Numbered from the whole stretch's first letter, positions 8,893 through 49,298 are shown. The stretch: DNA of 61,769 nucleotides, filler included, from Hemiscyllium ocellatum (GCF_020745735.1; 4 parts of 4 records of this genome joined end to end with filler, not necessarily neighbours in it), one strand, 5' to 3'. The notes: generated by a model from the sequence alone, not told the origin. Numbers and translations: made by a program.

Positions 8893-9078
8893 GGTGTAGA
8901 TGGAGGGTGCAGACAGCGGTGTAGACAGTGGGTGTAGATGGTGGGTGCAAACAGAGGGGCTAGACAGTGACTGGATACTGGGTGCAGACAGTGGGTACAG
9001 ACAGTGGGAGCAGATGGTGTTGTAGACAGAAGGTCCAGACGGTAGTTTCAGATGGTGGTGTAGACAGTAGTGTAGACA
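8893..9078. repeat. Degenerate ~12-bp G-rich minisatellite (GTAGACAGTGGG-like)
   Basis: Repeated GTAGACAG/GCAGACAG/GTAGATGG units at roughly 12-nt period, about 15 copies. Confidence 0.75.
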
Positions 9079-9714: not shown

Positions 9715-10045
9715 GTGCAATATGTTGGCTCAGTGGTTTGCACTGCTGCCTCACAGCACCAGGGACCTGGGTTCGATTCCAGCCCGAGATGACTGTCTTT
9801 GTGGAGTTTGCACACTCCCCCTGTGTCTGTGTGGGTTTCCTCCGTGTGCTCCAGTTCCCTCCCACAATCTAAAGATGTGCAGGTTATGTGAATTGGCCAT
9901 TCTAAAATTGCCACAGTGGTCAAGAATCTGTCAGTCAGGGGAAATGTTGAGTAAAAAGGGAGGGAAATGTGTCTCAGGGAGTCTGTCTTCAGAGGGTTGG
10001 TGTTGGCTTGTTGGACCAAATGGCCTGTTTCCTCACTGTGACAGT
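9715..10045 (+). mobile_element. SINE of the same family
   Basis: GGCTCAGTGGTTTGCACTGCTGCCTCACAGCACCAGGGACCTGGGTTCGATTCC...GGCCTGTTTCCTCACTGT. Confidence 0.75.
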
Positions 10046-11254: not shown

Positions 11255-11760
11255 CAAATACCTCAGAGACACCGACAGGCAGCACAGAGTAACACATTCA
11301 CACTCATTGAGATACAAAGTTAAAAATCACACAGCACCAGGTTATAGTCCCACAGGTTTAATTGGAAGCACACTAGCTTTCGGAGCGCCACTCCATCATC
11401 AAGGGAGTGTCCTCCACAACCACCTGATGAAGGAGCGGCACTCCGAAAGCTAATGTACTTCCAATTAAACCTGTTGGATTATAACTTGCTGTTGTGTGAT
11501 TTTTAACGTTGTACACCCCAGAGCAACACCGGCATCTCCAAATCATTGCACTGCCTGCAGCCAGTGCAGAATAACACACACACACACACACACACACCCC
11601 TACAGGCAACACTGAGTAACACACACACTCAGAGAGTCAAGCAGCACTGAGTAACATGCTCACACTCCATTCTGCCTGTCCGTTTCTCTCTGAATAACAC
11701 TCCCACACTCAGAGTGACACCTACAGGCAGCATTATGTAGTACATTCACACGCAGCCTGC
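11255..11760. repeat. CA-rich ~40-bp degenerate minisatellite interrupted by a palindromic repeat
   Basis: Units like ACAGGCAGCACTGAGTAACACACACACTCAGAGAG recur near 11275, 11600, 11640 and 11720; (CA)n at ~11575-11598. Confidence 0.6.
11315..11530. mobile_element. Palindromic Penelope-associated/MITE-like repeat
   Basis: AAAAATCACACAGCACCAGGTTATAGTCC...CTAGCTTTCGGAG and its inverse CTCCGAAAGCTA...GGATTATAAC...GTGTGATTTTT; another copy at ~57355-57555 and a half copy at ~11030-11140. Family assignment is uncertain. Confidence 0.6.
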
Positions 11761-12040
11761 AGTGCCAGTGATTGGCCTGAGATCACTTCAGGTACAACAC
11801 AGCATGCAGCAAAGGATAGGCATTGGATAGGCATATGGAGGAAAGTGGGCTAGTGTAGGTTAGGTGGGCTTAGATCGGCGCAACATCGAGGGCCGAAGGG
11901 CCTGTACAGCGCTTTATGTTTCTATGTTCTATGTTCTAAAGAGTGCAGAGTGCAATCCCAGCACCTGAGCCTGGATCACAGAGTGAAGAGGGAATGCTGA
12001 AGATTGTAATTATTGAGTCCTGACAGCTTTCTGTTTCTAG

Positions 12041-25546: not shown

Positions 25547-27124
25547 TGTCTTTCTGAAAATAAGGGAATTACTGTTACTTTAGGAATTAACTCAGACAAC
25601 CTCTCAAACCCTCCTTCATTTATTTCAAGTGAGATTCTCCAGAGGCACAATTGAGGCATCATCCGCTTCTTTGATGCAGTTCATTAAACAAATAGATTAA
25701 CTCATGGTTTCATGGCATCTATTTGAAACATTGACGCAACAAATGATTATATTATGCACTAGCTATCTAGCCTCACACTCTGTGGATACCCCGACCCAAC
25801 AGGCAAAGATATTTCTGTACTCATCATGTGATGTCCCCAGTGGCATATACTAAGCTGAGTTCCTTTTGTAACCTAAAATGAGACCTGCTCTTCATTCCTG
25901 TTATTCCTCAATTATTTCGTGCATTTAAGTATTATATTTACTTTTGGATTTTGCTTGGTACTGAGCGTTTTCATGCCAATTAATTTCATGTCATGTATTT
26001 TTCAAAACACATATCACACAGAAATTGCTGACCTCACTATGAGCTTAAATGGAAGGCTACCTGAGAGGGGAGCATTACGTGAAAATTATTTGTTGTGTGG
26101 ATACTGTAGATCTCTTAATTTTTTCAGCTGAACTCAACATGCACGACAGACGTCCAATATTCCAATGCAAAATGTTTTCATAGTTGAAGTTAATGTAGTT
26201 TAAAATGCAAAGTGTCGAATGGTTCATTTCCATCAGAGGGGAGAATAAAGACTTCTAGGGTATTGTATGCATGCGCTTTGAAGTCGACAGTTGGCTGTCT
26301 TAAATTTCAATCACATTGTCATATGCTGTACTGAGAAACGCTGTCATCCTGAGGCATCTTCTTTCTGAACAAACGCTGAATTTGTGTCCTGTCAACTCAT
26401 TCAAGCAGATGTTAAGAAACTTCCAGCATTATTTGAAGAAGTACAAGGGGCGGGACACCGAGCGTGGAGTTGTGGGTGAGTGATTCCAGTGGTGTTGTGG
26501 ACCCGTGTTACAAAGTCATATGATACTAAATAGAAGCGCATTGGCTGACTTTCTAATTAAATGTTTTACTCATAATGACAGCAGCTACAACTGCAAACTG
26601 GGCACGCCTTCAACCAATCTCCTGTCTTAGACGTCAAATTTAAAAAAAGGAGCGATTTTGACTCCAGTCTCACTGAACCTATCAAAAGGCAGCTACTTCT
26701 TTTTCCCTCCACTTTATTCAGAGAATATATAACTACAGTAAGGCTCTGTGCAGCTCATAAATTAGTGAAAGGGAGGACTGCAGATGCTGGAGATCAGAGT
26801 CAAACCGTGGTGCTGGAAAAACACAGCACGACAGGCAGCTTCTGAGGAGCAGGAGAACCGATATTTGGAGCATCAGGAATGAGGCTTGTTGAAAGGTTCA
26901 GATCTGGAAATCCTCAAATCCCCATTCAGGGAACACTCATAACCAAACAAAAAGTTGTGAATCCTCCTTCTTTTTATCGTTGCTGTCAGTTTACTGTATG
27001 AGTTTGGACAAATGTGCAGAGACGTTGTGAATTTAATGCGAAATAGCCCGATTCTAATCAGTCCCTTTTTTTTTAATTTAGCCATTCTATTCACTTCATG
27101 TCTTCATGGAAACCATTAAGCACC

Positions 27125-27157
<33 letters not shown>

Positions 27158-27169
27158 CTCTCTCCTCTC

Positions 27170-27437
27170 GTGAGAAAGAGAGAGAGAGAGAAAGAAATTG
27201 ACCTTCCTTCCTGTTAACTGCTTCCGGGCTCTGTGTCACTGACGAACCAAAAGAAGCTCGAAATTCAACAGAGAGATGTGCGAAGTGGGAGAGAGATAGA
27301 GAGAGAAAGAAGGGCTAGAGGGATATATATATCCCCTTCCCTCCAATCTCTGTTGAATTTCGAGATTCCTTTGGTTCGTCAGTGACACAGAGCCAAGCAG
27401 CAGTTAACAGGAAGGAAGTTCAATCTCTCGCTCTCAC
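27170..27437. repeat. Fold-back inverted repeat (~90-100-nt arms)
   Basis: CTTCCTTCCTGTTAACTGC...GGCTCTGTGTCACTGACGAACCAAA.GAA.CTCGAAATTCAACAGAGA (~27200-27277) is mirrored at ~27346-27437; the loop contains the perfect palindrome GGGATATATATATCCC (27320-27335). Confidence 0.9.
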
Positions 27438-27484
27438 CTGCGTTCTCTCTGGAACTATATTTTATTTCTTTCAAAGTGAATATT

Positions 27485-27630
27485 TCTTCAGCCAAACAGT
27501 GACCAGTCCAGTGTAGCAGTGTAATTTGAGATATAAAAGTTGAAGACACCGCCACCTACTACGATGCAGCGAACTGCACGTATAAATGTCTCACAGGCCT
27601 GAGCATTTGCCTTCACACAATTGAAAAATA
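27485..27630 (+). pseudogene. Possible 3' remnant of an IgNAR-like/NAR-TCR V exon with degenerate 23-RSS
   Basis: FSQTV (TTCAGCCAAACAGTG) then, after a frameshift, DIKVEDTATYYDAA (Cys codon replaced); CACAGGC (27592-27598)-23 nt-TGAAAAATA (27622-27630). Short and highly decayed. Confidence 0.35.
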
Positions 27631-28283
27631 TATGCAGCAGACAGCACGAAGAAGTTTTGATGCCAGTATCCCTTTATACCCATTTAATTTTGAGGTAATT
27701 TGATATTCACTGTCATAGTTCTGCAACATTTTTCTCAGCTTTTATGACCTGCCCAATTCTATCTGGCATTCATGTAGGACCTCATTAGTAGCAACCAATG
27801 TCAAAGAGAACAGTTTGGGTGAATGAAAACTGTGAATCAACGAATATTGGTTGTTTATCTAAACCTGTTGAAATAGCTGTAAAGAGTCAAGCTTGAAGCC
27901 TTGCTTCCACATTGCATTGAGGAATAATTTAAAAATGCAGCACTATAGTTGTTTCATAAACATGTGTCTGGATCTGCAATAGTGGAGACAGTCACAGACG
28001 ATGAGTATCTTCATATCTCACCATGGTGTGCATCTTCCTGTTAACCACCATAGCCTATTAATTATTGAGATAAGAAGCATCTCTTCAGTAGGGTCATTCT
28101 GCATAATAAGTCTCTCCTGCAATTCAATTCCATTATGTCCGATCTGATAATTCTCAAATCCCCTATCTTGCCTTCTTCACATAACCTGTAATTCTGTTAC
28201 TGACTCGAAATTGTCTATCTCAGCTCAGAACATATTTATTGATGTGGTCTCTCTATGATAAAGTTTTTCACTCCAATTGACTA

Positions 28284-29000
28284 TGTTATGAAGGTGTAGG
28301 TGTGTAGTGTACCTTTAAGATAGAGTGGTAGCTAGCAAGGACTGACTGAAAGCATAGAAAGCGCTGAAGAACTTAAGAATATAACTCTTGGTTGAAACAA
28401 ATATCTGGAGTTGCACGACCATGGAACAAAAACAAACTCAGTTTCTTCCAATCAGGTTAAATTATGCCCCAGATAACAAAATCAATCAAATTTCGACGTT
28501 GTATTTTGATAACATGAAACCAATGAAATGAACAATGTTTTGGGGTAGTAAACCGAACATTTTGAACACTCTGGGCAAAACTGCCAAGAAAACCAGCAGG
28601 TTTAGACAGATAGCCAAACAGCTCTCTGCAAGGTAACTGTCGATAACAAATTTGTGCATCTGAACACCAAAATTAACATCGACGAATCTACAGAAAAAAA
28701 TCGACATCCGAAGACTATACCTGGATTTGAAATTGTTTTTGCTGTAAAGTTAAGAGGAAATTTATTGGTCGAGTATTGTACAGTGGGATATAAATATCGG
28801 TTTAAGAGAAATGAGTTCTAAATAATGATTTTAATGGCCTCTGTTGTACTTACAGAATAAAATTGTTTTTTTTTACATTTAATAGTCAAATCTGGGATTG
28901 TTCTTTGCCTACCAAAATTTAACAGATTATGGTGCGAGGTGAGCTTCTTTGTGTTTTGGTTTTAAATTAGCAGACGGGTTGTCCCCATATCGCATTATCT
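28284..29000 (+). mobile_element. Possible LTR-like element
   Basis: Starts TGTTATGAAGGTGTAGGTGTGTAGTGTACCTTTAAGA, resembling shark LTR 5' ends as recalled; right end uncertain. Confidence 0.3.
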
Positions 29001-31376
29001 ATCCAATAAGGAAAGAAATTCCATACCACTTCTGTGATACACAACCGACTGCTTGTTCTGTGTTTATTAGAACTCTTGCCCAAGCCTGTCTTACAAGAGG
29101 AAACATCCAATCCTGTCAAATTATGGGTTATGCTATTCATTTATATTTCTTACATATGAATCTTTTGCATTTCAGTAAGGTCCCTTCTCATTTTTTGAAA
29201 GCAATGAGCACAGAATCGATCTATATGACGTCTCCTCATATGAGCGTCGCCCCAAACCTTACATCAACCTCAGTAACTTTCTCTGGATATCTTCAAATGT
29301 AAATATATATCTCCTTTGATGAAAAAGAATCAAAACTGTTTGCTGTCTTTCATGCTGGATTGAATCAACTTTTTTTTCAAGCCAGTCCTAAATTGTTTGA
29401 AGGTTCAAGTTGATTTTGACAAATTGAGCGAATAGTCAAAAAGATGACATATGCAGTACAACGTCCCAATTTGTAACTTATGCATTTCAACTCAATTAGA
29501 ATGTGAGTAACATTTTGTTCTAGTGAGAAGGTTGGATGCGCAAAGGGATCGATGTTCCCTTATACACCAATCAATGAAAGTCTAAAGGCAAGTGTAGCAA
29601 GCAATTTAGGAAGGTAAATGAGATATTAACCTTCATTTCAAGACGACTTGAGTTCAGAAGTAAAGATCTCCTATTGCAGTTATACAGAGCTTTCGTGAGA
29701 CCATACATGCTATGCTGTGTGCAGTTTTAGTGTCCATGATCTTAAGTGATTTATGCTTTACAGAAAAGGTTTGCAGAAAGTGTTTGCAGCAAAGTTCAGT
29801 AGAATGATCTAATGATTATAGTACTGTGCAACAAGTTTTGATGAAACCTGTATTCACTCGAGTTGAGAGAGATGAGAAACAATCTGATTGCAACAAAATA
29901 TATGAACAGGAATGGATAGAATGAATACAGGAAGATGTTCTCCCTGGTTTGGAAATCCATAACAAGGGGAAAGAGTCCCGGGAAAAGTGATGAGCCTTTT
30001 CGCTCTGAGATGAGGACAACTATGCCACCAAATTATTATGATTTCCACCTCGAAAGACAGGAAACAGTTTTGACCATTTTCCACTATCACTGAAAGTTTT
30101 GGAGGCAAAGTCACGAAACAGATTCAACATAGGCCATTTCTTAAAAATGCTTTGAAATCCCCATGGAATCTGTGATAAGAGGGATAAGAGCATTGAAATA
30201 GACAATCCTCTGTAATAATATGGAATGTCCAAACAAGCGAAGAGCGATAAATGGTATATTCCTGCTCCTAATTTCAGCATATATATTTGTTTAATGGTTT
30301 TTTAATGGTATGGGTGTACAATTCGCAGTCTATTCCTGTGAAAACAAGGAAGAACGAAGAGCCGAAGCTTATGTAGTTTACATTATGAAATGGTTTACAA
30401 ATTAACATGTTTGGGAGCTTACTTGGCTTGAGACGTTTGAAACAAATCGTGATTATAGGAAAATTGCCGAATTTCCATCAGGGTAAGTAACATCCTGGAA
30501 TTTTGAGAGGCGGAGCAGCTCTCATTGATGCATTCCTGGTCAGCTTTGGCAAATCGAAAAGAGAGAAAGCAGCAGATAAGCACAAGGGTCTAGGTGGAAG
30601 CTGCTTACTAGTATTTACCACTATTTGCACGGATGGAGTCGAGCGTGGTGCTCAAACACTGCCAAGGACATGCTCGACCAAACGTCTTGCCAAGCAATTT
30701 ATGGTCAACTTCAAACTGATTGAAAACTCTGGTGATACATCTCCAGAGAGAATCTATAATTAAAGTGGGAATATTGAAATAATCCAAATGTTGGAAGAAA
30801 CAGTAAGTAACAGGAAAACAATTGCGACAACTGATTGGAATGATTTCAACTGTCAACTGCAAAAAAATCTTGTTTTTCATGAACGGAATGCAACATCTTA
30901 AAGGAGAATGTCGACACTCGCCACTCACTGTCTTTGAGTCCAATAATCCTATTCACAATCTGGAATTAAAGTGCTTCATGTCTACGAGCCCACAATTTGT
31001 AATGGAACAGATGAAACCCCCTTAAAAGAGATAAAACAGATCGCCGAAACCCGTATTTGCTATTTTGTTAAAGTCAATTATAATGTGCTGCGTTCTGGAT
31101 ATGATTCAATTGGTCAAACTGCTGGGTTTTAGGCAAAATGCAGTATAATATTTCACAGAAGTTAAAGTAAAAACAGAGTGCAAAGAAAATGCATAACTTA
31201 AATTTATCAAAATACTGTCAAAATACTATAGTATGTAACATCAACTGTTCCAATATAATAGAATGTCATAAACACAACCTTGCAAAGACAAATTCAGAAG
31301 AACGGATTTGCTCACCTGTCATGCCTACTACTGAGGAAGAAAGGGAAAGAAAGGATAGAGACAATATAGCATGATT

Positions 31377-31421
<45 letters not shown>

Positions 31422-31969
31422 ATGTCAATTCCAAAACACCGATTTCAACAGCTGAGACCAAAATAAAGCCGTGGGTCTCTGTGAGCCTGATTTAACCTAC
31501 CCATTTTAAAAATAAAAATAAACTTACTCAACTATTCGAGGAGCAGTCATCTAAGCACAAGGTTTAAATCATCCCCTTTAAAATGATGAAAAAGTGAACA
31601 GAAAAAAATCCTATTAAAGGCATATTTAGTTGGACGCCATCCTTTCAATAAGTTATCATATAAGCAAAAATGAAATTAAACCGACTGAAAAGATTTCATT
31701 CTAAAGTGAACTTCAGAGTAATAAGGATATTCAAGCAAGAAATTAAGTACGTAAATGAAAGAAAAGTGATTCACAGACGTCCATAGACAGTGTGAAAAAT
31801 CCCAAAGGATTTGCATTTCGCCATCGATATTTCACTGTGAGGCAAATAGAAAATTGCTGATAAATTGCATTGTTAACTGTTGACTCTTATTCTGTGAAAC
31901 AAATTAACACAACCACATTTCTCCTCCCCATCGATTTTTTTGTACAATGATCTTGTGTTCCTTGTCCAG

Positions 31970-32333
31970 CACATTCAAGTTCTCTGGTGTCCATGTGTTC
32001 ACTTTTAAAATCATCTGCTGCTGGTGACATCATTAATTTAAGCTGTGAATATTCAGCATTCTGTCAATATTCATCGTTCTGTCAATACACGATTTAATGG
32101 GACCATCAGTTCCCAGGACACGCTCTGACATACCTGCTTCACAGACGCACTTCAGCAGAGTAGAATAAGTATAGTACTGATGGAAGACGAAGTTCTGCTG
32201 TTGTCGAATTCTGACCAGTTTCCAGTTCTCGCTCGTCCCAGTGTTCACTATAATGCTCTCTGTTTGTTAAAAGTCTCCAGCACAGAACTGAGAAACTTAG
32301 ATCTGTACGACTCTGCATTTAGTTTACGTTCAG
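31970..32333 (+). pseudogene. NAR-TCR supporting V-delta (leaderless V) pseudogene
   Basis: Acceptor TTGTGTTCCTTGTCCAG, then (P)HSSSLVSMCSLLKSSAAGDIINLSCEYSAFCQYSSFCQYTI*WDHQFPGHALTYLLHRRTSAE*NKYSTDGRRSSAV...CSLFVKSLQ...DSA. Has the B-strand Cys, a CDR1 FCQY Cys and the C-strand Trp, with several stops. Matches the recalled nurse-shark supporting V-delta pattern (SSLVSM...CEYSGFCQYTIYWYRQ.PG). Confidence 0.72.
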
Positions 32334-32372
32334 CACAATGCTACAGCGTACGGTGAGAGATGGAAAAGCATC
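32334..32372 (+). other. Degenerate 23-RSS of the supporting V-delta
   Basis: CACAATG + CTACAGCGTACGGTGAGAGATGG (23 nt) + AAAAGCATC (5/9 nonamer match). Confidence 0.45.
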
Positions 32373-35300
32373 TAAACATTGTAGGGATAGCAGATACACA
32401 GCGATAGAGAACGCGGAGAAAACTGCCCAAATAAAACTTAACGTTGTGCGGTGGCAGATGCGTGATTGAGGCACGGAAAGAGATGAAAAAAACTGAACAT
32501 GGCAGTACTTATTTCTTTTAATTCCATGAGGGAGATAAGCGTCTTTAGATAGTTACCATTTATTGCATTGGAAAGGTGAAGGTGAGCTGCCTTCTTGAAC
32601 CGCTCCAGTCCCCGTTCTGCTGCTAGATTCATGATGCATGTGAGCAAGGACTTCCAATAATTTAAAACAGAAACATCGATATGTTACAAACTCAGCATAA
32701 CGGTGACCTTGCTCGGGAAATTAAAGGTGATGCTATTCCAAGCTACCTGATGCATTTGTGCTTCGAGATGGAAGTTTATTTGTTTGCAAATTGCTACTAA
32801 GGATCATTTATGAACTTCTGCAGTGAATCATACAGGGAGCATACACTGCTGTAACTTAGCATCGTGGTAATGTCACTGACCGAGCAATCAAAAACAGCAG
32901 ATTAATCTTCGGGGTCATGGATTCCACCATCGCAATTGAATGATATGGAAAGCAGTGCTAAACAATCTGGAATTAAATCTCCGTTTCTGGAAATGGCCAT
33001 GGAAGTCTTCGCTGGTGAGGTATCAACAATGTCCTCTAAAATTGCAGTGATGCTGTTGCTCCTTTCCTCAAGTCTTGTTGTAATGAAAGAAAATTTGGAA
33101 GTATTGCAGTGAATTCGCTTCTGTGAGCGGATGATATGACTGTGAATAGCTGGGTCTGGCTGATTGCTGAATGACCAATCTATTAAATATTTTATTATGC
33201 TTAAAGCCTGAAAAAGACAGATGTTTGATCAGTAAAGGAATCATGAAAGTGTAGTCGGAAATCTTCAATGATCTAGCTGGATGCTGTAGCAGACTCGATG
33301 GATAGAATGGCCAACCTTTGGTGCTACACCTTATATTCTAATGCATTTGCATTCATGTTTGAAGTTTTTTTTTCCTTGGCGCCCAAGTGATTGCTCTGTG
33401 TTCATCAGATTACTGTGATAGGTGCTAAAGTTCTGCTGGAGAAACTTTAACATATCAACTTTGATTCAATGGTGATCTCGCCCTGTAGGCCACTGAGCCT
33501 AAAAGGAAGACTGGGCAATCTACCAGAATCCTGTGCTTAAACATATCAGGATGGAAAAATGACTATTCATGAACAAATATTGATCATAGTGATGTCTTCC
33601 AGATCTATCTAACTCGAAAACAATCTATTTTCTTCAAGTTGCCCGCCTGATTTCTTTTTTGCAAATCTTGCTTGTTCTGAAATATCAGTTACATTTTTAA
33701 ATTTCTGATTAATAAATATACGTAGCATACTAAGGACATTACAATAATTAGAATCAGAAAATAAAAAGGCCTTCTGTTCTCAGTTTGCTCTTCTTCATTG
33801 TCTGCGCCATGCCATATCACCTTGTTCAAGCTTTTTAACAACTGAATGGGGGACTGTGGAATTTGGTGATGAATTATTGCATGTTGAGTGAAGTTCTGTT
33901 TTCTCATTTGATTCGACAACAGTAGCCTGAATGAAACAGAAAAGTTGAGTGGAGAACAGTCCTGATGGAGGGGAGAACGACCAGTAACGGTGTTTCCTTT
34001 GTGAATTTCACATCCATTCTCATGTACCAGATGAGAACATTGAGCTATCTTGTGGGATTTAGTTGTGGAACATCTAATTGTTACTAATGTCACTGAATGT
34101 ATTAAGAATTCTTTCGCTTAAAAATACGAGATAATTAAGAATGCAACGCAAATGAGAAGGGGCAGGCTTAGGTTAGTGGGAGAACTTCAGCTCAGCAGCT
34201 ATCATTAGAAGGAACATTGCTGCTTGGTGAGGGTTTGTGTTGAGGAGCCAGAGGGTTCTTAGCTATTCCCTCACCAACAAACATGATGTTATTGCTCATC
34301 TTCAATGATGTGGAAGGTGTGAAACTGTTTTTTTTTTGCTTCGGTTTATTAAGTGAAATGTACGTGAAATGTTTCTTGTAGCTTAGTTTCCCTCTAGACA
34401 TTCTGCTACAGGATAACTTGGTCACATTTTGAGCCCGTCACCGAATTTCCATTCCTGATTTACAGTCTTCCATTCTGTTCTAAAAGCTCGCAAAACCCAG
34501 TGAATGGCCCCTCTGTGCAAATTATTGCCCATTCTCTCTGTTATTGTCGTTACAGGATGTGCGGCCGTCATGAAATCACGAAAGCATTGTGTGAAGACGT
34601 GTTGTCCGCCCTTCCTTTATTCATTCCTTCCTTCCTTCCTTCCCTACCTTATGTCCTCCTTTCATCCTTTATTCCTCATTCTACGTTAATTTCTGCTTTT
34701 ACATTTTTTTTGTTTCATCCCTTTACTTTGTTACTTGCTTTCTTTATTTTGATTACTCCTTTTCATTAATATGAAGATAATTTGACTTACTAATCGGGTA
34801 TTCCCAGGCCATTACATCGGCAATTGCATTAATTAAACCTGTATTTATAAGTCATCCTTTGATATGGTCATATTTTGTGGTGTTATAAGAATGTTGTCTT
34901 AGTGACATCCCTATTCTTGAAATGTGGGCATTAATAAACAATGAGTGGTTTCATGAATCAAGATGAGTATCTACTACACGATTGGTGTGTAGGTTATCAG
35001 AGAAATATTGCATGCACTAATCAAAAATGTGCATCAAGCAGCACATATGTTGGCGCAACATCACGAAAATTCCCTCTTCTTTGCTCTGTCAAACACCATC
35101 TGGAAAACAACAACGTGGGCATGCTGCAGAGCAACCCGCCATCCATATTGCCAAGCAAGTCATTTCGTTAGTTAATGTTGCACCTCCGAGATGGAGTGTA
35201 ATATTTGCTCAGAGCTGTCAAATAAAATCGTTAAAAGCTCTATCAGAATCTCAATATATTGAACTCTCCGTCACCAAAATCAGAACGAAGTTTATCAAGC

Positions 35301-37275: not shown

Positions 37276-38827
37276 TTCCTAAAACGTCGTTTGAACTCTA
37301 CCTTCTGGCTCTCTCCTTCTTGCCTTACAAGAATACATTTAATAATCCCGAGTTTTCAGATTTTGGATTTGCGGTGATTGAGAAAAGACAGTGTGCTATC
37401 GATACTTATCCATCATTTACCATCCCTTTCTTCACTCTCCCTGGGAACAGAGCAATGGAAGAAGATTAAAATATCCCACGATGGTGTGTGTACAGTTCCC
37501 ACTAACAGGAGTTCAATATCACCAAAGAATGAAGAACACTCTGTACCCCGTCCTTGCAGTGTGAACCAACCAGGGCTTTGTACAAGTGAAGCAAAGTTTC
37601 CCTCATGAGTGCAGCAGGCTCTGTCGCAGGCTGTATAGCAGGGGGAATGTAACTGTAAATATACACTCTAAATTAGGTGGATAAGTTTCAAAATTATTTT
37701 GAAGAAATGTCAACGTAAAATCAGTTTCCAATATTAATAAAATCGTGAAAGAACTGCGAATGCTGTAAATTAAATACAACAGTAAAAATTGCTAGGGAAG
37801 TTCACCGTAACTGGCAGGAAATGTGGAGTGAAATTATTGTTAACGTTTCGAGTCGACTGGCCATTCCTCGCAACTAATTCTCAGGAAGGGCTACTCGACC
37901 CGCGGTATTAAATCTTAATTCCCAAATTAAGATTTTTGTTATAAAGCGCTTCTTTTAGTGAATTTGGTCCCTAACCTTTGATTACACGAACTAACTGTGT
38001 GTTTGTGATATTTGCGTGAGTGTCAGTGAACGTATTTATACAGTTCTATGCGATTCACTCCCGTTCGTCATCAATCTATAAGTGATCATAATTCTGAATA
38101 TTAATGTTACTTACGTTGACGTTATCTCTCACCTTCTCTTTATGTTTCTCTGCACTCAATGTCACGACATTTACTTAATAAAATAAGGAAGCAAATGCGG
38201 GTAACCATAGGCTGTGTAGATCGACTTCTGTAATTGTGGCAAAATAGTAGAGTCTATCATAATGGACACTACATCAGATCATTCAGAAATCAATAACAAT
38301 AAAGCAGAGTCAGTAAGCCTTCATTGGGAGATGGGTAGGCATGAAAAGGCGTCTGTCAATTATTGAGGAATCCCCGTAATAGGTAGGAAGCAGGATAGAT
38401 TAAACGAAATGAGACGGTGCGACATATGTGTATTTCTTGAAGTTGTTTGTCACATGCTGAATAAAACAAATCCGTGGTAGCGGAGGTATATATCAGAGGA
38501 CTGGCTAACGAACATCATACGTTAAACTAATTACAGAAGGTAGCATTACATGCTGAAGGCATAGCCAAATAAATGAGAATGAAGCAGAATGCCATGAGAA
38601 TCAAAACGTTGCTCTTAAAAAAAAACCCAAGAGGAGTCCTCAAATAAAGGTGCATTGACGCTGTTCGAAGTTTAGCACTCATACAGTCATGACACACAAG
38701 GAAGAGAAGCAAAGTAAATTACAATGGAAAACAAAACCCTCTGGCGATCAATGAGAACAGTAGGTGTTAACTGTCTGCTCGGTATTGGAGCGTCCTCTGG
38801 TGTGCACAAACTGAAACTCTCAAGGTG

Positions 38828-38867
38828 GGTTTTTGTACAGGATCCACTATATCTCTGTGTCAATGTG
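38828..38867 (-). other. RSS of V copy 1 (CACATTG-24-ACAAAAACC)
   Basis: Heptamer 38867-38861, spacer 38860-38837 (24 nt), consensus nonamer 38836-38828. Confidence 0.9.
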
Positions 38868-39345
38868 AGCTGCATGGCACAGAGATACACGGCGCTGTCA
38901 GAGATGAGGATATTGCGAATAAATAGTTCAGTGATCTTGCCAGTTCTATTTGAAGAAAATCGATCACTGATGCCAGTGTTCCTGTGCAGATTCATCCCAA
39001 TAATTCGAAACATGAACTCTGGAGGCTGCATGTGTCGCTGAATGTACCAGTATGCATAAGGGTTAGAATCACTTGTCTTCAAATTGCAGGTGAGGGCGAT
39101 GTCATTTCCCTCTTCAACCGTCATTTCAGCAACCGATTGTTCCACTGTATCCTGCTGGCTCCATTCTAACACGTGAAACGAAGTAAAAATGACAATCAAT
39201 ATCATAGTCATATTGATCAACATAATCGTCACCAATCGTTAAACAATAACATTCTTTTTGGAATATTTTACCCTTTTCTGAGAAAGAGATACTTACTGAG
39301 GTTAGACACGATTATGAGGATTGGTATGAGATATTTTCCAATCAT
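38868..39345 (-). CDS. TCR alpha/delta-type V segment, copy 1, intact (leader 39345-39297, V exon 39165-38868)
   Basis: Leader MIGKYLIPILIIVSNL|GTAAGT; 131-nt intron; V exon (K)WSQQDTVEQSVAEMTVEEGNDIALTCNLKTSDSNPYAYWYIQRHMQPPEFMFRIIGMNLHRNTGISDRFSSNRTGKITELFIRNILISDSAVYLCAMQ with C23, W41, DSAVYLC; followed by an RSS. The alpha/delta assignment is by motif. Confidence 0.88.
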
Positions 39346-39530: not shown

Positions 39531-42279
39531 CAGTTAATTCTAAACTTGACAATTTGTCTCGTGACTCTCAGCGACCTTCAGAGCTGAGAGTGGTTTAAAA
39601 AAAACATGACATTTCCATCACCGATCTGTGATCTGTTTTCAAAACTTGGAAAATGCTACTTACCATATTTCAATACATCTTTTATAACAGATACGAGTAT
39701 TTTAATTTTATCCCAATAGAATTTCAACAGCATAAATAGCATTTCTGAACATCAGCGACGTTCTTTTACTTCTGGTTTGAGGAATGACAAATGATGTAGC
39801 TGGGACATTGCATTTAGCAATATAACCTCCGACCGATCCACTGCTCTTTCTTCTCAAATGGGTGATTTTAATTACAGGCAAACTCCGTTTCTGTGGATCT
39901 GGTTTCCATAGCTTCAGTTTCCCACGGTTTACTGCAGCTCAAATATATTGCAGGGAGCCTTCCAGAACCAGGGGCTATCAGTAATGCACATTTCCATTTA
40001 GATGAATGGGTTCGCTACTATGCACGATTTCAGGCTTCTGTAATAGGTCTTGGAATGTATCCCCCGTAGGTGTGGGGGGGTTACTGCATTTAGCATTTAA
40101 ATCAAGGAGAAACAAAAGTAAGTCGTGTCACTTGAATTTGAATATGGTAGATTTTCTTTGTTAATTTTAATGTTCAAAACGTAAACCATGAAAAAAAGCA
40201 AGGGAAAACATTCATTCTATGTTTATTTTGCAATGGCGTGTAATGGCATCGTAGTGGTATTACTGCGTAAGTAATTGAGAGGCTCAGGCAAGTGCTCTGT
40301 GGGGAGATCGACTAATGGAATGTAAATTCAGTTATGAAATAATCTATAATTAATTAGTACCTGGAAGGATATTTGTGACATTGTAATCGATTGGTGTACA
40401 ATTTAAAAAAAAACAAAAGAACAGTACTCAAATAAAGATGTTTTGATGCCGTTCGAAGTTTAGCACTCGTGTAGTCGCATCCATTTAACACCAGTTGGAA
40501 TCATAATATCATTTTAATCACAAGAGCGAGCAGCGGGGCCAGGGACTTTAACACTTTAATTCTGTCAACATTCAGCCAAACTACCTCTCATTGTTCATCG
40601 ATCCGAGCTCACGAGAGCAGAGGAAAAGATAGTTGTTTCCGCAGACATGACACACAAGTAAGAGAAGCAAAGTACATTTCAACTGAAAACAAAAACTTCC
40701 AGCGATCACAGCGGGTCAGGCGGCATCCAAGGAATGAAGCAAAACGCCAATGTTTCGCCTCTAGGTTACTCTTTTTTGGAGCTTGTTGAAGAATCATTGA
40801 GACCCAAAATGTTAGAATGCTCGCTCTCGATGGATGGTGCCTTATCCGCCGTGGTTTTCAGCATGTATTGCTTTGAAAATTGATTCAGTCACCTACAGGA
40901 ATTTGCTTCTAAACAGGAAATCAGAGAAGCATTTAATGACGTATGAGCAATAAAGAGTGTTTAAAGAGGCGTAGGGCTGATCAGAGAATAAGACAAAGGG
41001 GCCGTACACATGACCACAGGAAAAATGGCTGAGTTGTACACTCAATACTTCGCACCAGATTATTCTGTTTGTTATAGATTCACGAAATTTTAACAATCTC
41101 CCTGCTGTCTGGTGAATCTGTTTACAATAACAAGGGAATCGTGCTAGGATTGCATTCAATAACCCAATTTTGGGAGACTTTCTTCTGTATTCCAGAAACA
41201 ATTTTAAGAGAGGAGGAAATTGATATGAATTGGTGAGTATTCCTAGGGATTAAGACCTGGGCAGACTTTTCGTAAGTCCAGAAAAAGGACACATAAGGAC
41301 TTTGAGGGGAAAAAGGGTAGAAATCTTGGGACCACTGGCAATTGGGGGAGGAGACAAATTCGCTTTTAGTCTTCCTTGGGTGAGGGGAAGTGCCAGAAAA
41401 CTTGAAACATTGAATTTTTGTACCGTTCAATAAATGGAGCCAGACCACTCCAGTTTCCTCAGCACAACCTGTTCATATTTCCAAATAATCATTGCTTTTA
41501 GCGGTATGAGCGCACCATCTGATCGACATGAGTTGGAAATTTCAGCGTTTTAGTGTTTGTCCTCGCCATCTCTGCAGGAATGTGGGATGCATGGCAGACA
41601 GACTAACTGCGCTGCAGCGGAGAAGGAGGCCATCGATATTTTAAACAGTCATTTTGTTTAACGTGTGCAATTTAACAGAGAGCCATCCCAGTAATTCTGG
41701 AGACCTCACTTCTCCTCCCTGCCTTCCCCACCTCCCCATCATATAACCCAACTCATTCACCCATCAGGCCATAAATATTCAGTAAATATGTCGGACCATC
41801 CCGCATTGTCTGGATGCACCAGACGATTATTGGAATGCACCAAGTCATCAAGTAAGCTCATTGCAAATTTACCATTTATCTCGCGAATCAATAATTTGGG
41901 TTGGATTTGTAAGGCAGACTCTTTGCCATTTGTTTTTGCTTTACAGAAGAAAGTCTGTCAAAATTGCGACAATACACGCATTCCCTGGACGATTCCCATA
42001 TTATTATTAAACAGATTCACCAGACAGTACGATGTTTGTTATCGGTACCGAACTTCGAGAGTACATTGTGTCTGGTTTACATTCGACAGAAATTGACAGA
42101 ATTTTCTGAGGAACATGCTGCACAGCATAGGAAACATGTTTATTTTTCCCATGAGTTAAGATTGTCTGCTCTATCATAGCTGATGACAGCTACACAGCAA
42201 TTAATGCGAACAGTAGGTGTTAACTGTCTGCTCGTGCTTGAGCGCAATCTGGTGTGCACAAACTGATACGCTCAAGGTG

Positions 42280-42579
42280 GGTTTTTGTACAGTATCCACA
42301 ATATCTCCGTATCAATGTAAGCTGCATGGCACAGAGATACACGGCGCTGTCAGAGATGAGGATATTGCGAATAAATAGGTCAGTGATCTTTCCAGTTTTA
42401 TTTGAAGAAAATCGATCACTGATACCAGTGTTCCTGTGCAGATTTATCCCAATAAATCGAAACATGAACTCTGGAGGCTGCATGTGTCGCTGACTGTACC
42501 AGTATGCATTAGGGTTAGGAGGGCGATGTCCTTTCCCTCTTCAACCGTCATTTCAGCAATCGATTGTTCAACTGTATCC
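42280..42579 (-). pseudogene. TCR V copy 2, pseudogene
   Basis: Leader, intron and promoter are deleted (junction at 42579/42580 to sequence equivalent to ~40857); 25-nt deletion at 42518/42519 removes C23; heptamer is TACATTG (42319-42313); spacer 24 nt; consensus nonamer. Confidence 0.9.
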
Positions 42580-44083
42580 GATTTATAGATTTTCAGCATG
42601 TATTGCTTTGAAAACAGAATCAGTCACCTGCAGGAATTTGCTTCTAAACAGGAAACCTGAGCAGCATTTCATGGCATATGAGCAATGAAAGAGTGTTTAA
42701 AGAGGCGTAGGGCTGATCAGAGAATAGAGGGCAGAATTATAGAGGGCTGATCAGAGAATAAACCAAACGGGCCGTACACATGACGACAGGAGAAATGGCT
42801 GAGTTGTACACTCAATACTTCGCACCTGTATATTGTGTCCCATTTAGATTCATGAAATTTTAACAATCTCCCTGCTGTCTAGTGAATCTGTTTACAATAA
42901 TAAGGGAATCGTCCAGCGATTGCATTCACTAACCCAATTTTGGGAGACTTTCTTCTATATTCCAGAAACAATTTTAAGAGAGAAGGAAATTGATGTAAGT
43001 TGGTGAGTATTCCGAGGGATGAAGACCTGCACAGACCTTTCGTAAGTCCAGAAAAAGCACATATAAGGACTTTGAGGTAAAAAAAGGGTAGAAATCTTGG
43101 GAACACTGGCAAATGGGGGAGGAGACAAATTCACTTTTAGTCTTCCTTGGGTGAGGGGAAGTGTCAGAAAACTCGGAACATTGAATTTTCGTGCCTTTCA
43201 ATAAATGGAGTGAGACCACTCCAGTTTCCTCAGCACATCTTGTCCATATTTCTAAATAATCGTTGCTTTTAGCGGTATGAGCGCACCAACTGATCGACAT
43301 GAGGAGGAAATTTCAGCTTTTTAGTGTGCGTCCTCGCCATCTCTGCAGGAATGTGGGATACATGGCAGAGAGACAAACTGCGTTGCGGCGGAGAAGGAAG
43401 ACATTAATATTTAAAACAGTCATTTTGTTTAACGTGTGCAATTTAACAGAGAGCCATCCCAGCAAATCTGGAGACCTCACTTCACCTCCCTGCATTCCCC
43501 ACCTCCCTTTCACATAACCCAACTCTCTCACCCACCAGGCCATAAATATTCTGTAAATACCTCGGACCGTCCCGTAGTTTCTGGATGTACCAGACGATTG
43601 TAGGAATGCACTAACTCGTCAAGTAAGCTGATTGTAAATTTATGCCGTTTATCTCGAGAATCAAGAATTCGGGTTGGATTTGTAAGGCAGACTCTTTGCC
43701 ATTAGTTTTTGTTTTACAGAAGAAAGTCTCTCAAAATTGCGACAATACACGCACTCCCTGGACGATTCTCACGTTATTTTAAAACAGATTCACCAGACAG
43801 CAGGGTTTTTCTTTCGGTACCGAACTTCGAGAGTACATTGTGTCTGGATTACATTCAACATAAATTGACAGAATGTTCTTTCTGTGTCTGATTTCAAAAT
43901 GTAATTTAGATGAGGAACATGCTGCACATAATAAGAAAAAGTGTTTTTTGTTTCTCTGAGGTAAGATCGGCTGCTCTATCATAGCTGATGACAGCTAAAC
44001 ATCAATCAATGAGAATTGTAGTTGTTAACTGTCTGCTCGGTGCTGATCGCCCTCTAGTGTGCCCAAAATGAAACTCTCAAGGT

Positions 44084-44605
44084 GGGTTTTGTACAGGATC
44101 CACTATATCTCTGTATCAATGGGATCTGCATGACACAGAGATACACGGCGCTGTCGGAGATGAGGATATTGCGAATAAATAGTTCAGTGATCTTGCCAGT
44201 TCTATTTGAAGAAAATCGATCACTGATGCCAGTGATCCTGTGCAGATTCATCCCAATAAATCGAAACATGAACTCTGGAGGCTGCATGTGTCGCTGACTG
44301 TACCAGTATGAATTATGATTAGAATAACTTGTCTTCAAATTGCAGGTGAGGGCGATGTCCTTTCCCTCTTCAACCGTCATTTCAGCAATCGATTGTTCCA
44401 CTGTATCCTGCTGGCTCCATTCTAACACGTGAAACGAAATAAAAATGTCAATCAATATCATACTCATATTGATCAACATAATCGTCACCATCTCATTGAT
44501 AAACAATAACATTCTTTTTGTAATATTTTGCCCTTTTCTAAGGAACAGTTACTTACTGAGACTAAACAGAATTATGCAGATTGTTATGAGATATTTCCCA
44601 ATCAT
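44084..44605 (-). CDS. TCR V copy 3, open reading frame with defective RSS (leader 44605-44557, V exon 44421-44124)
   Basis: Leader MIGKYLITICIILFSL; V ...TCNLKTSYSNHNSYWYSQ...DSAVYLCVMQ; RSS CCCATTG-24-ACAAAACCC lacks the essential CAC. Confidence 0.85.
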
Positions 44606-47593
44606 GTTTGCCGACTCTGCAACTCGAACAGAGCAGAACTACAGATCCTTGACGAACTGCTTTGCTGATCTTGTCAATAATATAGATGGTGCAGCAGACG
44701 CAATCTCTTCAAAAGCACAATTGCGTCAGAGTGAATGTGAGGGTTTGGGGGCGGGGTAACTGCAGGAAACTGAAGCTTTGGGCGGGAAGACGGTCGATTC
44801 TAAACTTGACAATTTGTCTAGTGACTCTCAGCGACCTTCAGAGCTGAGAGTTGATTAAAAAAACATGTCATTTCCATCACCGATCTGTGATCTGTTTTCA
44901 AAATTTGGAAAATGCTACTTACCATATTTCAATACGCGACATCTTTTATAAAAGATAAGAGTATTTTAATTTTATCCGCATAGAATTTCAAAAGCATAAA
45001 TAACATTTCTGAACATCAGCGACAGTCTTATAACACTGCTTTGAGGAATGACAAATGATGTAGCTGGGACACTGCCTTTGACAATATAATTTCCGACCTA
45101 TCCACTGTTCTTTCTTGACTAATGGGTGATTTCAACTGCAGGGCGAACTCTGTTTCTGTGGGCCTGGTTTCCGTAGTTTCAGTTTCCCCCGGTTTACTGC
45201 AGCACAAATATATATTATAGGGAGCCTTCCAGAACCAGGGACCAGGGACTGCCAGGAATGCACATTTCCATTTAGATGAATGGGATCGCTACTATCCACG
45301 ATTTCAGGCTTCTGTAATATGTCTTGGAATGTATCCCTCATAGGTGTGTGTGTGGGGGGGGTGGGGGGGTGTGGCTACTTCATTGTACATTTAAATCAAG
45401 GAGAAACAAGAGTAAGTCGTGTCACTTGAATTTGAATATGGTAGAGTTACTTTGTTAATTTTAATGTTCAAAACGTAAAACGTGAAAAAAAGCACGGGAA
45501 AGCATTTATGCTATGATTAATTTGCAATGGCGTGTAATGGCATTGTAGTGGAATTACTGTGTAAGTAATTCAGAGGCTCAGGCAAGTGCTCTGTGGGGAG
45601 GTCGACTAATGGAATGCAAATTTTATTATGAAATAATCCATAATTAATTAGTACCTGGAAGGATATTTGTGACATTGTAATCGATTGTAAAACACAAGAG
45701 GAGTATTCAGATATAAATATTTTGATGCCATTCGAAGTTTAGCACTCATGCAGTCGCATCCATTTAACACCAGGTGGAATCATTATATCACTTTAATTAC
45801 AAGAGCGAGAAATGGGGTGAGGGACTTTGACACTTTCATTCGATCAACATTCAGCCAAAATATCTCTCATTGTTCATCGATACGAGCACACGAGAGCACA
45901 GGAGAAGATGGTTGTTTCCGCAGACATGACAGACAAGTAAGAGAAACAAAGTCAATTGCAACTCAAAACAAAAACTGCTGGCGATCACAGCGGGTCAGGC
46001 AGAATCCAAGCAATCAATCAGAAAACCAATGTTTCGCATCTAGGTTACTCCTTTTTGGAGCCTGTTGAAGAATCATTGAGACCCAAAGAGTTAGAATGCT
46101 CGCCCTCGATGGATGGTGCTTGATCCGCCGCGCTTTTCAGCATGTATTGCTTTGAAAACAGATTCAGTCACCTGCAGGAATTTTGCTTCTAAACAGGAAA
46201 TCTGAGAAGCATTTAATGACCTATGAGCAATGAAAGAGTGTTTAAAGAGGCGTAGGGCTGATCAGAGAATAAACCAAAGGGGCCGTACACATGACCACAT
46301 GAGAAATGACTGAGTTGTACACTCAATACTTCGCACCTGTATATTGTGTCCAGTGTAGATTCATGAAATTTGAACAATCTCCCTGCTGTCTGGTGAATCT
46401 GTTTACAATAATAAGGGAATCGTCCAGGGATAGCATTCATTGTCTCACTTTTGGGAGTCTTTCTTCTGTATTCCAGAAAAAAATTTAAGAGAGGAGGAAA
46501 TTGATATGAATTGGTGAGTATTTTTAGTGATGAAGACCTGGACAGACTTTTCTTAAGTCCAGAAAAAGCACATATAAGGACTTTGAAGGAAAAAAAAGGT
46601 TAGAAATCTTGTGACCACTGGTATTTGTGGGAGGAGACAAATTCGCTTTTAGTCTTCCTTGGGTGATGGAAAGTGTCAGAAAACTTGAAACATTGAATTT
46701 TCGTGCCTTTCACAAAATGGAGACAGACCACTCCAGTGTCCTCAGCACATTTTGTTCATATTTCCAAACAATCGTTGCTTTTAGAGGTATGAGCACACCA
46801 TCTGATCGACATGAGTTGGAAAATTCAGCATTTTAGTGTGTGTCCTCGCCATCTCTGCAGGAATGTGGGATACATGGTAGGGAGACTAACTGCGCTGCAG
46901 CGGAAAGGAAGCCATCGATATTTAAAACAGTCATTTTCTTTAACGTGTGCAATTTAACAGAGAGCCATCCCAGTAAATCTGGAGACCTCACTTCACATCC
47001 CTGCATCCCCTACCTTCCCCTCACATAACCCAACTCACTCACCCGCCAGGCCATAAATACTCAGTAAATATCTCGGACCTTCCCGCAGTTTCTGGATATG
47101 CCAGAAGAGTATTGTAATGCACTAAGTCGTCAAGTAAAGTCATTGTAAATTTATGCCATTTATCTCGAGAATCAATAATTCGGGTTAGATTTGTTGGGCA
47201 GACTCTTTGCCACTTGTTTTTGTTTTACAGAAGAAAGTCTCTCAAAATTGCGACAATACACGCAATCCCTGGACGATTCCCATCAAATTTTAAAACAGAT
47301 TCATCAGACAGCAGGGTGTTTGTTATTGGTATCGAACTTCGAGAGTACATTGTGTCTGGTTTACATTCAGCAGAAATTGACAGAATGTTCTGCCTGTGTC
47401 TAACTTCAAAATGTAATTCAGATGACTAACATGCAGCGCATAATAAGGAAACTATTTTTTTCCCTGAGGTAAGATTGGCTGCTCTATCATAGTTGAAGAC
47501 AGCTACACAGCAATCAATGAGAACAGGAGGTGTGAACTGTCTGGTCGGTGTTGGAGCGCCCTCTGGTGTGCACAAACTGAAACTCTCAAGGTG

Positions 47594-47633
47594 GGTTTTT
47601 GTACAGGATCCACTATATCTCTGTATCAATGTG
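47594..47633 (-). other. RSS of V copy 4 (CACATTG-24-ACAAAAACC)
   Basis: Heptamer 47633-47627, spacer 47626-47603 (24 nt), nonamer 47602-47594. Confidence 0.9.
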
Positions 47634-48115
47634 AGCTGCATGGCACAGAGATACACGGCGCTGTCGGAGATGAGGATATTGCGAATAAATAGTTCAGTGG
47701 TCTTGCCAGTTCCATTTGAAGAAAATCGATCACTGATGCCAGTGCTCCTGTGCAGATTCATCCCAATCAATCGAAACATGAACTCTGGAGGATGCATGTG
47801 TCGCTGACTGTACCAGTGTGCATGAGGGTTAGAATCACTTGTCTTCAAATTGCAGGTGAGGGCGGTGTCCTTTCCGTCTTCAACCGTCATTTCAGCAATC
47901 GATTGTTCCACTGTATCCTGCTGGCTCCATTCTAACACGCGAAAGGAAGTAAAAATGACAATCAATATCGTACTCATATTGATCAACATAATCGTCACCA
48001 TCTCGTCAATAAACAATAACACTCTTTTTGAAATATTTAGCCCTTTTCTGAGAAAGAGATACTTACTGATAATGGACACGATTATGAGGATTGGTATGAG
48101 ATATTTCCCAATCAT
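47634..48115 (-). CDS. TCR V copy 4, intact (leader 48115-48067, V exon 47931-47634)
   Basis: Leader MIGKYLIPILIIVSII|GTAAGT; 135-nt intron; V ...TALTCNLKTSDSNPHAHWYSQRHMHPPEFMFRLIG...DSAVYLCAMQ; followed by an RSS. Confidence 0.88.
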
Positions 48116-49298
48116 GTTTGCCGACTCTGCAACTCGAACAGAGTAGAATTACAGATCCTTGATGAACTGCTTTGCTGATCTTGTCAATAACATAGATGGT
48201 GCAGCAGAAGCAATCTCTTCAAAAGCATAATTGCGTCTGAGTGAATGTGAGGGTTTGGGGGCGGGGTAAGTGCAGGAAACTGAAGCTTTGGACGGGGAGA
48301 CGGTCGATTCTAAACTTGACTATTTGTCTCGTGACTCTCAGCGACCTTCAGAGCCGAGAGTGGTTTAAATAAACATAACATTTCCATCACCGATCTGTGA
48401 TCTGTTTTCAAAACTTGGAAAATGCTTCCTACCATATTTCAATACTCGACATCTTTTATCATAGATATGAGTATTTTAATTTTATCTCCATAGAATTTCA
48501 ACAGCATAAATAACATTTCTGAACTTCAGCGACGTTCTTATAGTCCTGATTTGTGGAATAGCAAATCATGTAGCTGGGACACTGCATTTGACAATATAAT
48601 CTCCGACCTATCCACTGTTCTTTCTTCACTCGTGGGTGATTTCAACTACAGGGCGAACTCCGTTTCTGTGGACCTGGTTTCCATAGCTTCAGTTTCCCGA
48701 GGTTTACAGTCCCACAAATATATTATCACGGAGCGTTCCAGAATCTAGTACCGGGGGTTGCTCTTAATTCACATTTCCATTTACTTGAATGGGTTCGCTA
48801 CTGTCCACGATTTCAGGTTTCTGTAATACGTCTTGGAATGCATCCCCCATCCGTGTGGGGGAACTACTGAATTGAACATTTAAATCAAGGAGAAACAAAA
48901 GTAAGTCGTGTCACTTGAATTTGAATATGGTAGAATTTCTTTGTTAAATTTAATGTTCAAAACGTAAACCAAGATAAAAAGCACGGGAAAACATTTATGC
49001 TATGTTTATTTTGCAATGGCGTGTAATGGCATCGTAGTGCTATTACTGCATAAGTAATTCAGAGGCTCAGGCAAGTGCTCTGTCTGGAGGTCGAGTAATG
49101 GAATGTAAATTCAGTTATGAAGTAATCTGTAAATAATTAGTACCTGGAAGGATATTTGTGACATTGTAATCGATTGGTGTACAAATTTAAAAACACACAA
49201 GAGGAGTCCTCAAATAAAGATGCTTTGACGCCGTTCGAAATTTTGCACTCATGCAGTCTCATCGATTTAACATCAGATGGAATCATTATATCACTTTA

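Follow-up and report, generated by a model that had tools for sequence, protein, structure and literature searches.

NAR-TcR, described by Criscitiello and colleagues in 2006, is found in all cartilaginous fish (PMC1845163, PMC3149040). In a working cassette, the leader-bearing NAR variable (V) segment rearranges to its own diversity (D) and joining (J) segments, and phase-1 splicing then joins the J exon to a supporting V-delta that has no leader. The supporting V-delta rearranges separately, by way of a recombination signal sequence (RSS) with a 23-nt spacer (23-RSS), to D and J segments of T-cell receptor (TCR) delta, and the product is a three-domain delta chain (PMC1845163, PMC5931798). 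The marks of the system are a cysteine in the a-b loop and a framework 2 devoid of tryptophan, both in the NAR V, and a cysteine in complementarity-determining region 1 (CDR1) of the supporting V; copies of NAR-TcR are also on record from the elephant shark (PMC1845163). The DNA considered here lies at positions 27186-32520 (plus strand) of a window of 61,769 nt from Hemiscyllium ocellatum (GCF_020745735.1; four parts joined with filler, and all coordinates below are those of this whole window). It is very probably a pseudogenised shark NAR-TcR cassette. As such it is a dead copy of a cassette type that is already known, and knowledge of how NAR-TcR works is unchanged by it. The piece of the window that was analysed spans 21784-49298 and is vertebrate DNA of ~40% G+C; its features are collected in Table 1.

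Comparison with the family requires a reference set. The first 41 codons of the supporting V exon (31972-32094), used as query in a HMMER scan of 1.84 billion representatives, gave one match only: residues 197-229 of a 299-residue Heterodontus francisci protein (E 4e-4), which consists of two V domains linked by a J-like stretch. With the Heterodontus protein as query, a word-based search gave 77 similarly built proteins of elasmobranchs (P0001-P0077), from 11 named shark genera and 3 genera of rays and sawfish. Typically, a leader (MGILLVFTLCVCLPRSFSQ) is followed by a first V (SVTQTPAAVTRKECQSLTITCVF...FFRQTQTGTERERISSGGRFVVSVNKAEKTFSLEIRDVRVEDTATYYCKA), a J (..DGSGTVVTVTAD) and a second V (SSSLVS..PPLQTSAAGDTVTLSCEYSGFCQYTVHWYRQSPGQAPKYLLQRHTSGE.NKENAAGGRISASID...LSDSAVYYCALSRRTAQ); some of these two-V gene models run on into TCR J and constant regions, and the first domain of P0003 matches solved structures of VNAR (the V of IgNAR) over its full length (E 4e-22). 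The a-b loop cysteine is present in 68 of the 77 and framework 2 has the form FF[KR]Q in equally many, while the tryptophan-containing form that was tested, G.W[YF][RK][QK]T, occurs in none. The CDR1 cysteine pattern of the second V is found in its strict form (both cysteines, CEYS.FCQYT..W) in 58 proteins and in a looser form in 72, and J is directly continuous with the second V in 69. Judged by these residues and this architecture, the 77 proteins are NAR-TcR chains. (Their NCBI names are misleading: DSCAM-like, lachesin-like, Ig gamma-1 heavy chain-like, Ig kappa light chain-like, TCR alpha chain MC.7.G5-like. Several contain an in-frame heptamer, ..THSD.., at the V end, and the models appear to be germline segments stitched together.) A metagenome scan with a NAR-TcR protein yielded V genes at 26-44% best-segment identity only, plus one 18-residue fragment.

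The sole reference that includes DNA is L001, a 1007-bp ENA contig carrying an independent shark supporting V. Its CDR1 cysteine codon (L001:309-317) is TGA, the exon reading SGI-stop-QYT, and the database protein P0073 has W there; either the L001 supporting V is itself disabled or this is a base error.

Both V remnants are recognised by translated search. With the 77 proteins as tblastn queries, the second V of 74 matches 31957-32208 (best 71.6 bits, E 2e-17, ~50% identity), and the first V of 68 matches the upstream remnant at 27367-27504 (best 53.9 bits, E 2e-11, 54-59% identity), against 25.4 bits for the best match anywhere in the piece of the same proteins reversed. The initial annotation had proposed the downstream exon as the supporting V-delta of NAR-TcR, and its best alignment is indeed with the leaderless second V of NAR-TcR-type proteins. 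The ordinary leader-bearing V genes of the window, used as tblastn queries in their turn, find no match on 31970-32333 at E up to 10; these genes score 30-45 bits against the NAR-TcR proteins. A leader-like open reading frame (ORF) was looked for upstream of the supporting V, and none was found.

The exon begins with DSSSLVS directly behind its acceptor, a start homologous to that of L001 and of the gene models in which J runs straight in. From 31975 the frame reads SSSLVSMCSLLKSSAAGDIINLSCEYSAFCQY-[SSFCQY]-TI-stop-WDHQFPGHALTYLLHRRTSAE-stop-NKYSTDGRRSSAVVEF (the first stretch up to the first stop being SSSLVSMCSLLKSSAAGDIINLSCEYSAFCQYSSFCQYTI); after a +1 shift it goes on ...LKVSSTELRNLDLYDSAFSLRSAQ and enters the heptamer CACAATG. 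Cys23 is at 32044. The conserved CDR1 cysteine is present twice, at 32062 and 32080 (CEYSAFCQY), because an 18-bp tandem duplication at 32043-32087, which is an 18-nt insertion relative to L001, has doubled the motif. The CEYS.FCQYTI.W pattern by which the exon had been recognised as a supporting V-delta is real, with the family frequency given above. Stops interrupt the frame at 32095 and 32161, and its later change is due to a 1-nt insertion near 32207 (the +1 frameshift) together with a 36-nt insertion at ~32219-32254, both relative to L001. The second canonical cysteine has become serine (32312). Exon and RSS together are 65.6% identical in DNA to L001, from which the window differs in length by +18, +1 and +36 nt.

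The polypyrimidine tract and acceptor also align with L001, which reads CAG/AT where the window has CAC/AT at 31971-72. With its AG changed to AC the homologous acceptor is therefore dead. The AG at 31968-69, which keeps the phase, is a separate site one codon upstream of it. What had been described as a phase-1 acceptor at the start of the exon accordingly holds for this upstream AG, and does not hold for the homologous site. The decayed 23-RSS that had been noted behind the exon is present and matches the CACAGTG-23-CCAAAAACC of L001 position for position: the heptamer CACAATG and the 23-nt spacer are kept and the nonamer AAAAGCATC agrees with the consensus at 5 of 9 positions, which falls short of a functional 23-RSS. 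Read against L001, its state is one of decay and not of absence.

The upstream remnant extends farther than first described. A VEDTATYY remnant with a decayed 23-RSS had been noted from 27485 onward; both are present, and the V remnant itself starts at 27365. Just ahead of it, a pyrimidine-rich tract is followed by a candidate acceptor AG at 27363-64. Framework 1, CDR1 and framework 2 (27365-27513) read (D)SFGSSVTQSQAAVNRKEVQSLALTCVLSGTIFYFFQSEYFFSQTVTSPV, followed by a stop at 27514. Cys23 is kept at 27439, and framework 2 is without tryptophan, YFFSQT aligning with HFF[RK]QT of the family. The a-b loop cysteine has been replaced by valine (GTT at 27418-20; RKEVQS versus RKECQS), and its absence is a loss in a pseudogene. 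About 17 codons of the C'-D strands are gone and the frame is shifted. A second tblastn segment at 27470-27562, colinear with the first, aligns with the end of framework 3 (E 0.009 with the NAR V of P0001), where the remnant reads SSVI-stop-DIKVEDTATYYDAANCTYKCL with two stops, and where the second canonical cysteine has become aspartate. VEDTATYY itself is at 27539-27562, and the stretch DIKVEDTATYYDAA runs up to CACAGGC, the heptamer of the decayed RSS (heptamer 5 of 7, nonamer 5 of 9 relative to the consensus). This RSS sits where the read-through gene models have their in-frame heptamer (...THSD... tails).

The 5' end of the NAR V exon, together with its acceptor region, makes up a 250-nt palindrome (27186-27435), in which 27333-27435 is repeated in inverted orientation at 27186-27288 with a 44-nt loop and 85% complementarity of the arms. 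The inverted copy reads SVEFRASFGSSVTQSPEAVNRKEGQF and passes, at the outer end of the left arm, into what has become a (CT)n microsatellite (27125-27169). Inverted duplication and microsatellite take up the position at which the leader would be expected. (Contigs of all sequencing runs compared here break at 27332-27333.)

The two remnants, each by its similarity and its characteristic residues, belong specifically to the two V types of NAR-TcR. Their order and strand, NAR V upstream of supporting V-delta on the same strand, were correctly given in the initial annotation and, like their spacing, fit those of intact cassettes: the distance from the start of the NAR V to the end of the supporting V is ~4.97 kb here, compared with 4.85 kb for the gene model of an intact cassette in Heterodontus, 4.70 kb in Cetorhinus and 3.30 kb in Mustelus.

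No D or J could at first be found between the two. This still holds for D. For J, a score matrix of 13 columns, made from 72 J stretches and scanned over all six frames of the piece, has its top match at 27961-27999, HVSGSAIVETVTD versus the consensus YVDGSGTVVTVTA (5.9 bits), 317 nt behind the NAR V nonamer. In the family, ..YVDGSGTVVTVTA is followed by G and a splice donor; here the expected GT at 28001-02 reads AT, and the resulting ATGAGTA is one base off GTGAGTA. The junction would be in phase 1, as is required for joining the supporting V. In dinucleotide shuffles of 27632-31969, 9 of 1000 attain the J score, and none of 1000 does so with a donor within one mismatch as well. The segment at 27949-28007 is probably a J remnant with a dead donor.

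Certain results weigh against the identification of the cassette or of its parts. The J score taken alone does not stand out from shuffles of the whole piece (5.9 bits is attained by 3 of 20 plain ones), no RSS is recognisable before the J candidate, and the donor criterion, derived from family architecture as it is, was set after the sequence had been seen. Between the NAR V and the supporting V, neither a D segment nor a D- or J-flanking RSS rises above chance. A leader score matrix gave nothing above shuffles for the leader exon, and nothing like the typical leader of the family is found. The references for NAR V and J are proteins only, not germline DNA of an intact cassette. A search of 21784-49298 for a constant-region exon (tblastn with the 77 NAR-TcR-type proteins) found none. 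Finally, a lesion shared with the orthologues in two related species (B and C) is established for one codon only.

The first two of these points, together with the agreement of only 7 of 13 residues with the consensus, also speak for the J-like stretch having arisen by chance, with nothing but the two V remnants retained. What speaks for a J is that this is the best match in the whole piece, that it falls in the sole interval and on the strand where a J is expected, that a right-phase G and a sequence one base off a donor follow, and that the interval shuffles reproduce score and donor jointly in no case. A chance origin of the J-like stretch is on this account unlikely, though it is the strongest of the alternatives.

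Elsewhere in the former intron, the RSS consensus scan of the plus strand of 27632-31969 yields a single weak 12-spacer site, at 28567-28594, within a repeat. Family D regions encode ..SL[WC]... A CACTGTC at 27708-27714 was considered as a D-flanking heptamer or D core and dropped, ~0.5 such sites being expected by chance on our own estimate. The intron is loaded with high-copy elements at ~28000-29000, ~29600-29800 and ~30800-31400: in all four runs the summed contig word depth of these bins is 800-12000, against ~35 for single-copy DNA. Both V remnants are single copy by contig depth.

Two other explanations concern the identity of the V remnants. The first is that they are unrelated ordinary leader-bearing TCR or Ig V pseudogenes, 4.4 kb apart by chance, whose NAR-TcR likeness is superficial. 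Framework 3 ends of the EDTATYY type are common to many V families, which favours this explanation, and single reading-frame pieces of the remnants find no match in Pfam and only non-significant framework 1 matches in the PDB; this silence is attributable to the pieces being too short and too decayed. Against mere general V similarity (25-35%) stands the 50-59% identity of each remnant to the matching NAR-TcR domain. The CDR1 cysteine motif, the tryptophan-less FF.QT and the DSSSLVS start behind an acceptor are moreover all present, and order, strand and spacing are those of intact cassettes. Two unrelated pseudogenes are, on balance, a very improbable source of this arrangement.

Equally improbable is that the upstream remnant stems from the V of an IgNAR cluster, or from an Ig V of another type, that was inserted near a TCR V. 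The V segments of NAR-TcR and of IgNAR are related to each other. In cartilaginous fish the TCR alpha/delta locus has Ig clusters in its vicinity (PMC12227049). The remnant, however, has YFFSQT at the FF[KR]QT position, without the tryptophan that IgNAR keeps (PMC1845163), and a PDB search with it at E up to 10 brings up no VNAR, yet it matches 68 NAR-TcR proteins; a supporting V-delta lies directly downstream, with a phase-1 J-like remnant in between. From these residues and this context, the upstream remnant is not an IgNAR V, and a NAR-TcR V remains the preferred assignment.

It is scarcely credible that the cassette is intact in the animal and owes its lesions to faulty assembly or sequencing: assemblies do often break at palindromes and repeats, and the second individual's contigs (X1) do not cover 27400-27999, which is no specific support, while contigs from two different samples and studies show not one difference over 31431-32602, another run's contig (X5) reproduces 27206-28730, and the lesions are numerous, of varied kinds and set in DNA that diverges from the family by ~35%. 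The comparison of contigs from four runs covered 27000-32999, and the identity of the X1 contig, from a different sample and study, means that the lesions of the supporting V in particular are not assembly errors.

The cassette cannot work. No leader was found and the 5' end of the NAR V is caught in an inverted duplication; ~17 NAR V codons are deleted; stops and frameshifts interrupt both V segments, and both lack the second canonical cysteine, the NAR V its a-b loop cysteine as well. Mutation has struck the homologous acceptor of the supporting V and the donor of the candidate J, decay has reached the nonamers, and transposon insertions have brought repeats into the intron. What the stretch possesses are the NAR-TcR features that can be recognised in sequence; those on which function depends (leader, a-b loop cysteine, intact nonamers) are missing.

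Comparison with species B gives a divergence of 6.7% over 27332-28315 (NAR V), 7.3% over 28701-31368 (intron) and 7.2% over 31879-32723 (supporting V). The V remnants and the intervening intron thus change at one rate, which is what neutral DNA would show, and we infer that the death of the cassette lies far back and was followed by neutral drift. Position 27419 is G in both relatives, so that the codon specifies glycine (GGT), the same as in the inverted copy; the a-b loop cysteine was therefore lost before the three species split, and the death of the cassette is probably older than its separation from the two relatives. Two uncalibrated measures, the 15% by which the palindrome arms differ and the distance of 35% in DNA to L001, likewise point to an old death.

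Behind the supporting V, the window contains not one decayed RSS unit but three (starting at 32334, 32397 and ~32459, within 32334-32520). In L001 (534-837) a 61-nt unit is repeated 5.0 times; its consensus is a 23-RSS free of mismatches, CACAGTG-23-ACAAAAACC, plus 22 nt. Peptides derived from the RSS recur in the tails of read-through gene models of several orders (Hemiscyllium, Rhincodon, Stegostoma and Pristis). By alignment to L001, the units at 32397-32520 are apparent remains of a tandem RSS array; Tandem Repeats Finder does not call the window's own unit copies. That the decayed cassette preserves a truly family-wide feature, a tandem array of complete 23-RSS units behind the supporting V-delta in place of a single RSS, is doubtful. 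No mention of such arrays was found in the papers that could be searched, and they are put forward as a lead only; if selectively maintained, an array could serve repeated or secondary RAG cleavage at supporting V-delta segments.

A very high-copy element resembling a short interspersed element (SINE) lies at ~32568-32730, just behind the RSS units, and is common to all three species; its summed contig depth reaches 77000, compared with ~35 for single-copy DNA. In species B and C one contig each joins 31935 to 32734 via AAAATG, skipping supporting V, RSS units and SINE, and another contig of similar depth contains all three. The junction contigs may represent a paralogue, a structural variant or a graph artefact.

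The cassette lies between a minus-strand G protein-coupled receptor (GPCR) ORF, 4 kb away from it, and a group of minus-strand V genes of the V-set type with 23- or 24-spacer RSS. Repeats surround these V genes, which are spaced at 2-4 kb. Three of the copies have a hydrophobic leader-like stretch, MLINM.{1,2}IL.{4}F.SF.VLEW, that continues in frame and without a break into the V exon, the genes either being without a leader intron or having an open intron before an acceptor at ...GTGTTAG. Two of the four copies are followed by CACATTG-24-ACAAAAACC signals in the RSS consensus scan. A second RSS, CACAATG-24-ACAAACACC, is at 47315-47354, ~280 nt behind the first, with similar ones at 43803-43842 and 42031-42070, and weak matches to a second V-like family lie between the copies (for example 43554-43610 and 47062-47121). 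Two word-based protein database searches, one of which (with an overlong ORF as query) excluded entries the size of a V segment, found no relatives of this family. From the literature and these neighbouring V genes, the cassette is likely to be located in the TCR alpha/delta locus, as the initial annotation had it; the assignment rests on the literature because the piece contains no constant-region exon.

Table 1. Features of the analysed piece, in window coordinates
Feature	Position	Strand	Description or basis
GPCR ORF, rhodopsin-type, intact, intronless, 343 codons	21963-22991	minus	nearest solved relative GPR139, E 3.5e-12
Inverted duplicate of NAR V 5' end (left palindrome arm)	27186-27288	minus	103-nt arms; self-blastn; tblastn up to 34.7 bits
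NAR-TcR V pseudo-exon	27365-27591	plus	tblastn with NAR-TcR proteins
Decayed 23-RSS of NAR V	27592-27630	plus	CACAGGC (27592-98), 23-nt spacer, TGAAAAATA (27622-30)
Probable NAR-TcR J remnant	27949-28007 (coding to 28000)	plus	LFHKHVSGSAIVETVTD, then G, ATGAGTA
Former J-to-supporting-V intron	28008-31969	plus	repeat-loaded
Supporting (NAR-TcR-associated) V-delta pseudo-exon	31970-32333	plus	tblastn; DNA alignment to L001
Decayed 23-RSS of supporting V	32334-32372	plus	CACAATG (32334-40), 23-nt spacer, AAAAGCATC (32364-72)
Second RSS-like unit	32397-32435	plus	CACAGCG-23-CCAAATAAA; alignment to L001 array
Third RSS-like unit	~32459	plus	nonamer-like GAAAAAAAC near 32485; alignment to L001 array
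V gene family, copy 1	38690-39238	minus	Pfam V-set
V gene family, copy 2 (partial)	42223-42540	minus	Pfam V-set
V gene family, copy 3	44057-44548	minus	Pfam V-set
V gene family, copy 4	47429-48148	minus	Pfam V-set

A stretch that was otherwise unannotated is now marked as antigen-receptor territory, most likely the V region of TCR alpha/delta. The find also shows that NAR-TcR cassettes, as other V units do, arise and die within the locus. This one is devoid of open reading frames, so that gene finders miss such fossils, and dead copies provide raw data for counting NAR-TcR cassettes per genome or for dating their turnover.

The stretch agrees with intact NAR-TcR cassettes in its two V types, their order and common strand, the 23-RSS behind each, a comparable cassette length, a supporting V that lacks a leader, stands behind a phase-1 acceptor and carries a CDR1 cysteine, and a tryptophan-less framework 2 in the NAR V. 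It differs in being non-functional, with no leader or D found, with stops, frameshifts, a deletion and lost cysteines, with the J donor candidate and V acceptor mutated, the 5' end duplicated in inverted orientation and repeats inserted in the intron. With the IgNAR V (VNAR) clusters it shares the single-domain V lineage of its upstream remnant, the N-terminal domain of the reference matching VNARs; on the other hand the remnant lacks the framework 2 tryptophan, and a TCR-type V lies downstream in place of IgNAR constant exons. Ordinary TRAV/TRDV pseudogenes are likewise decayed V exons with degraded 23-RSS within a V cluster, whereas the supporting V here is of the leaderless clade and tied to an upstream V(D)J unit. 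Two V domains in one chain are also found in TCR mu of marsupials and monotremes, where the outer domain is antibody-like and the inner one supports it (PMC3457774). TCR mu is of independent origin, uses VH-related V genes and is absent from cartilaginous fish, and only the V fold is common to it and to NAR-TcR.

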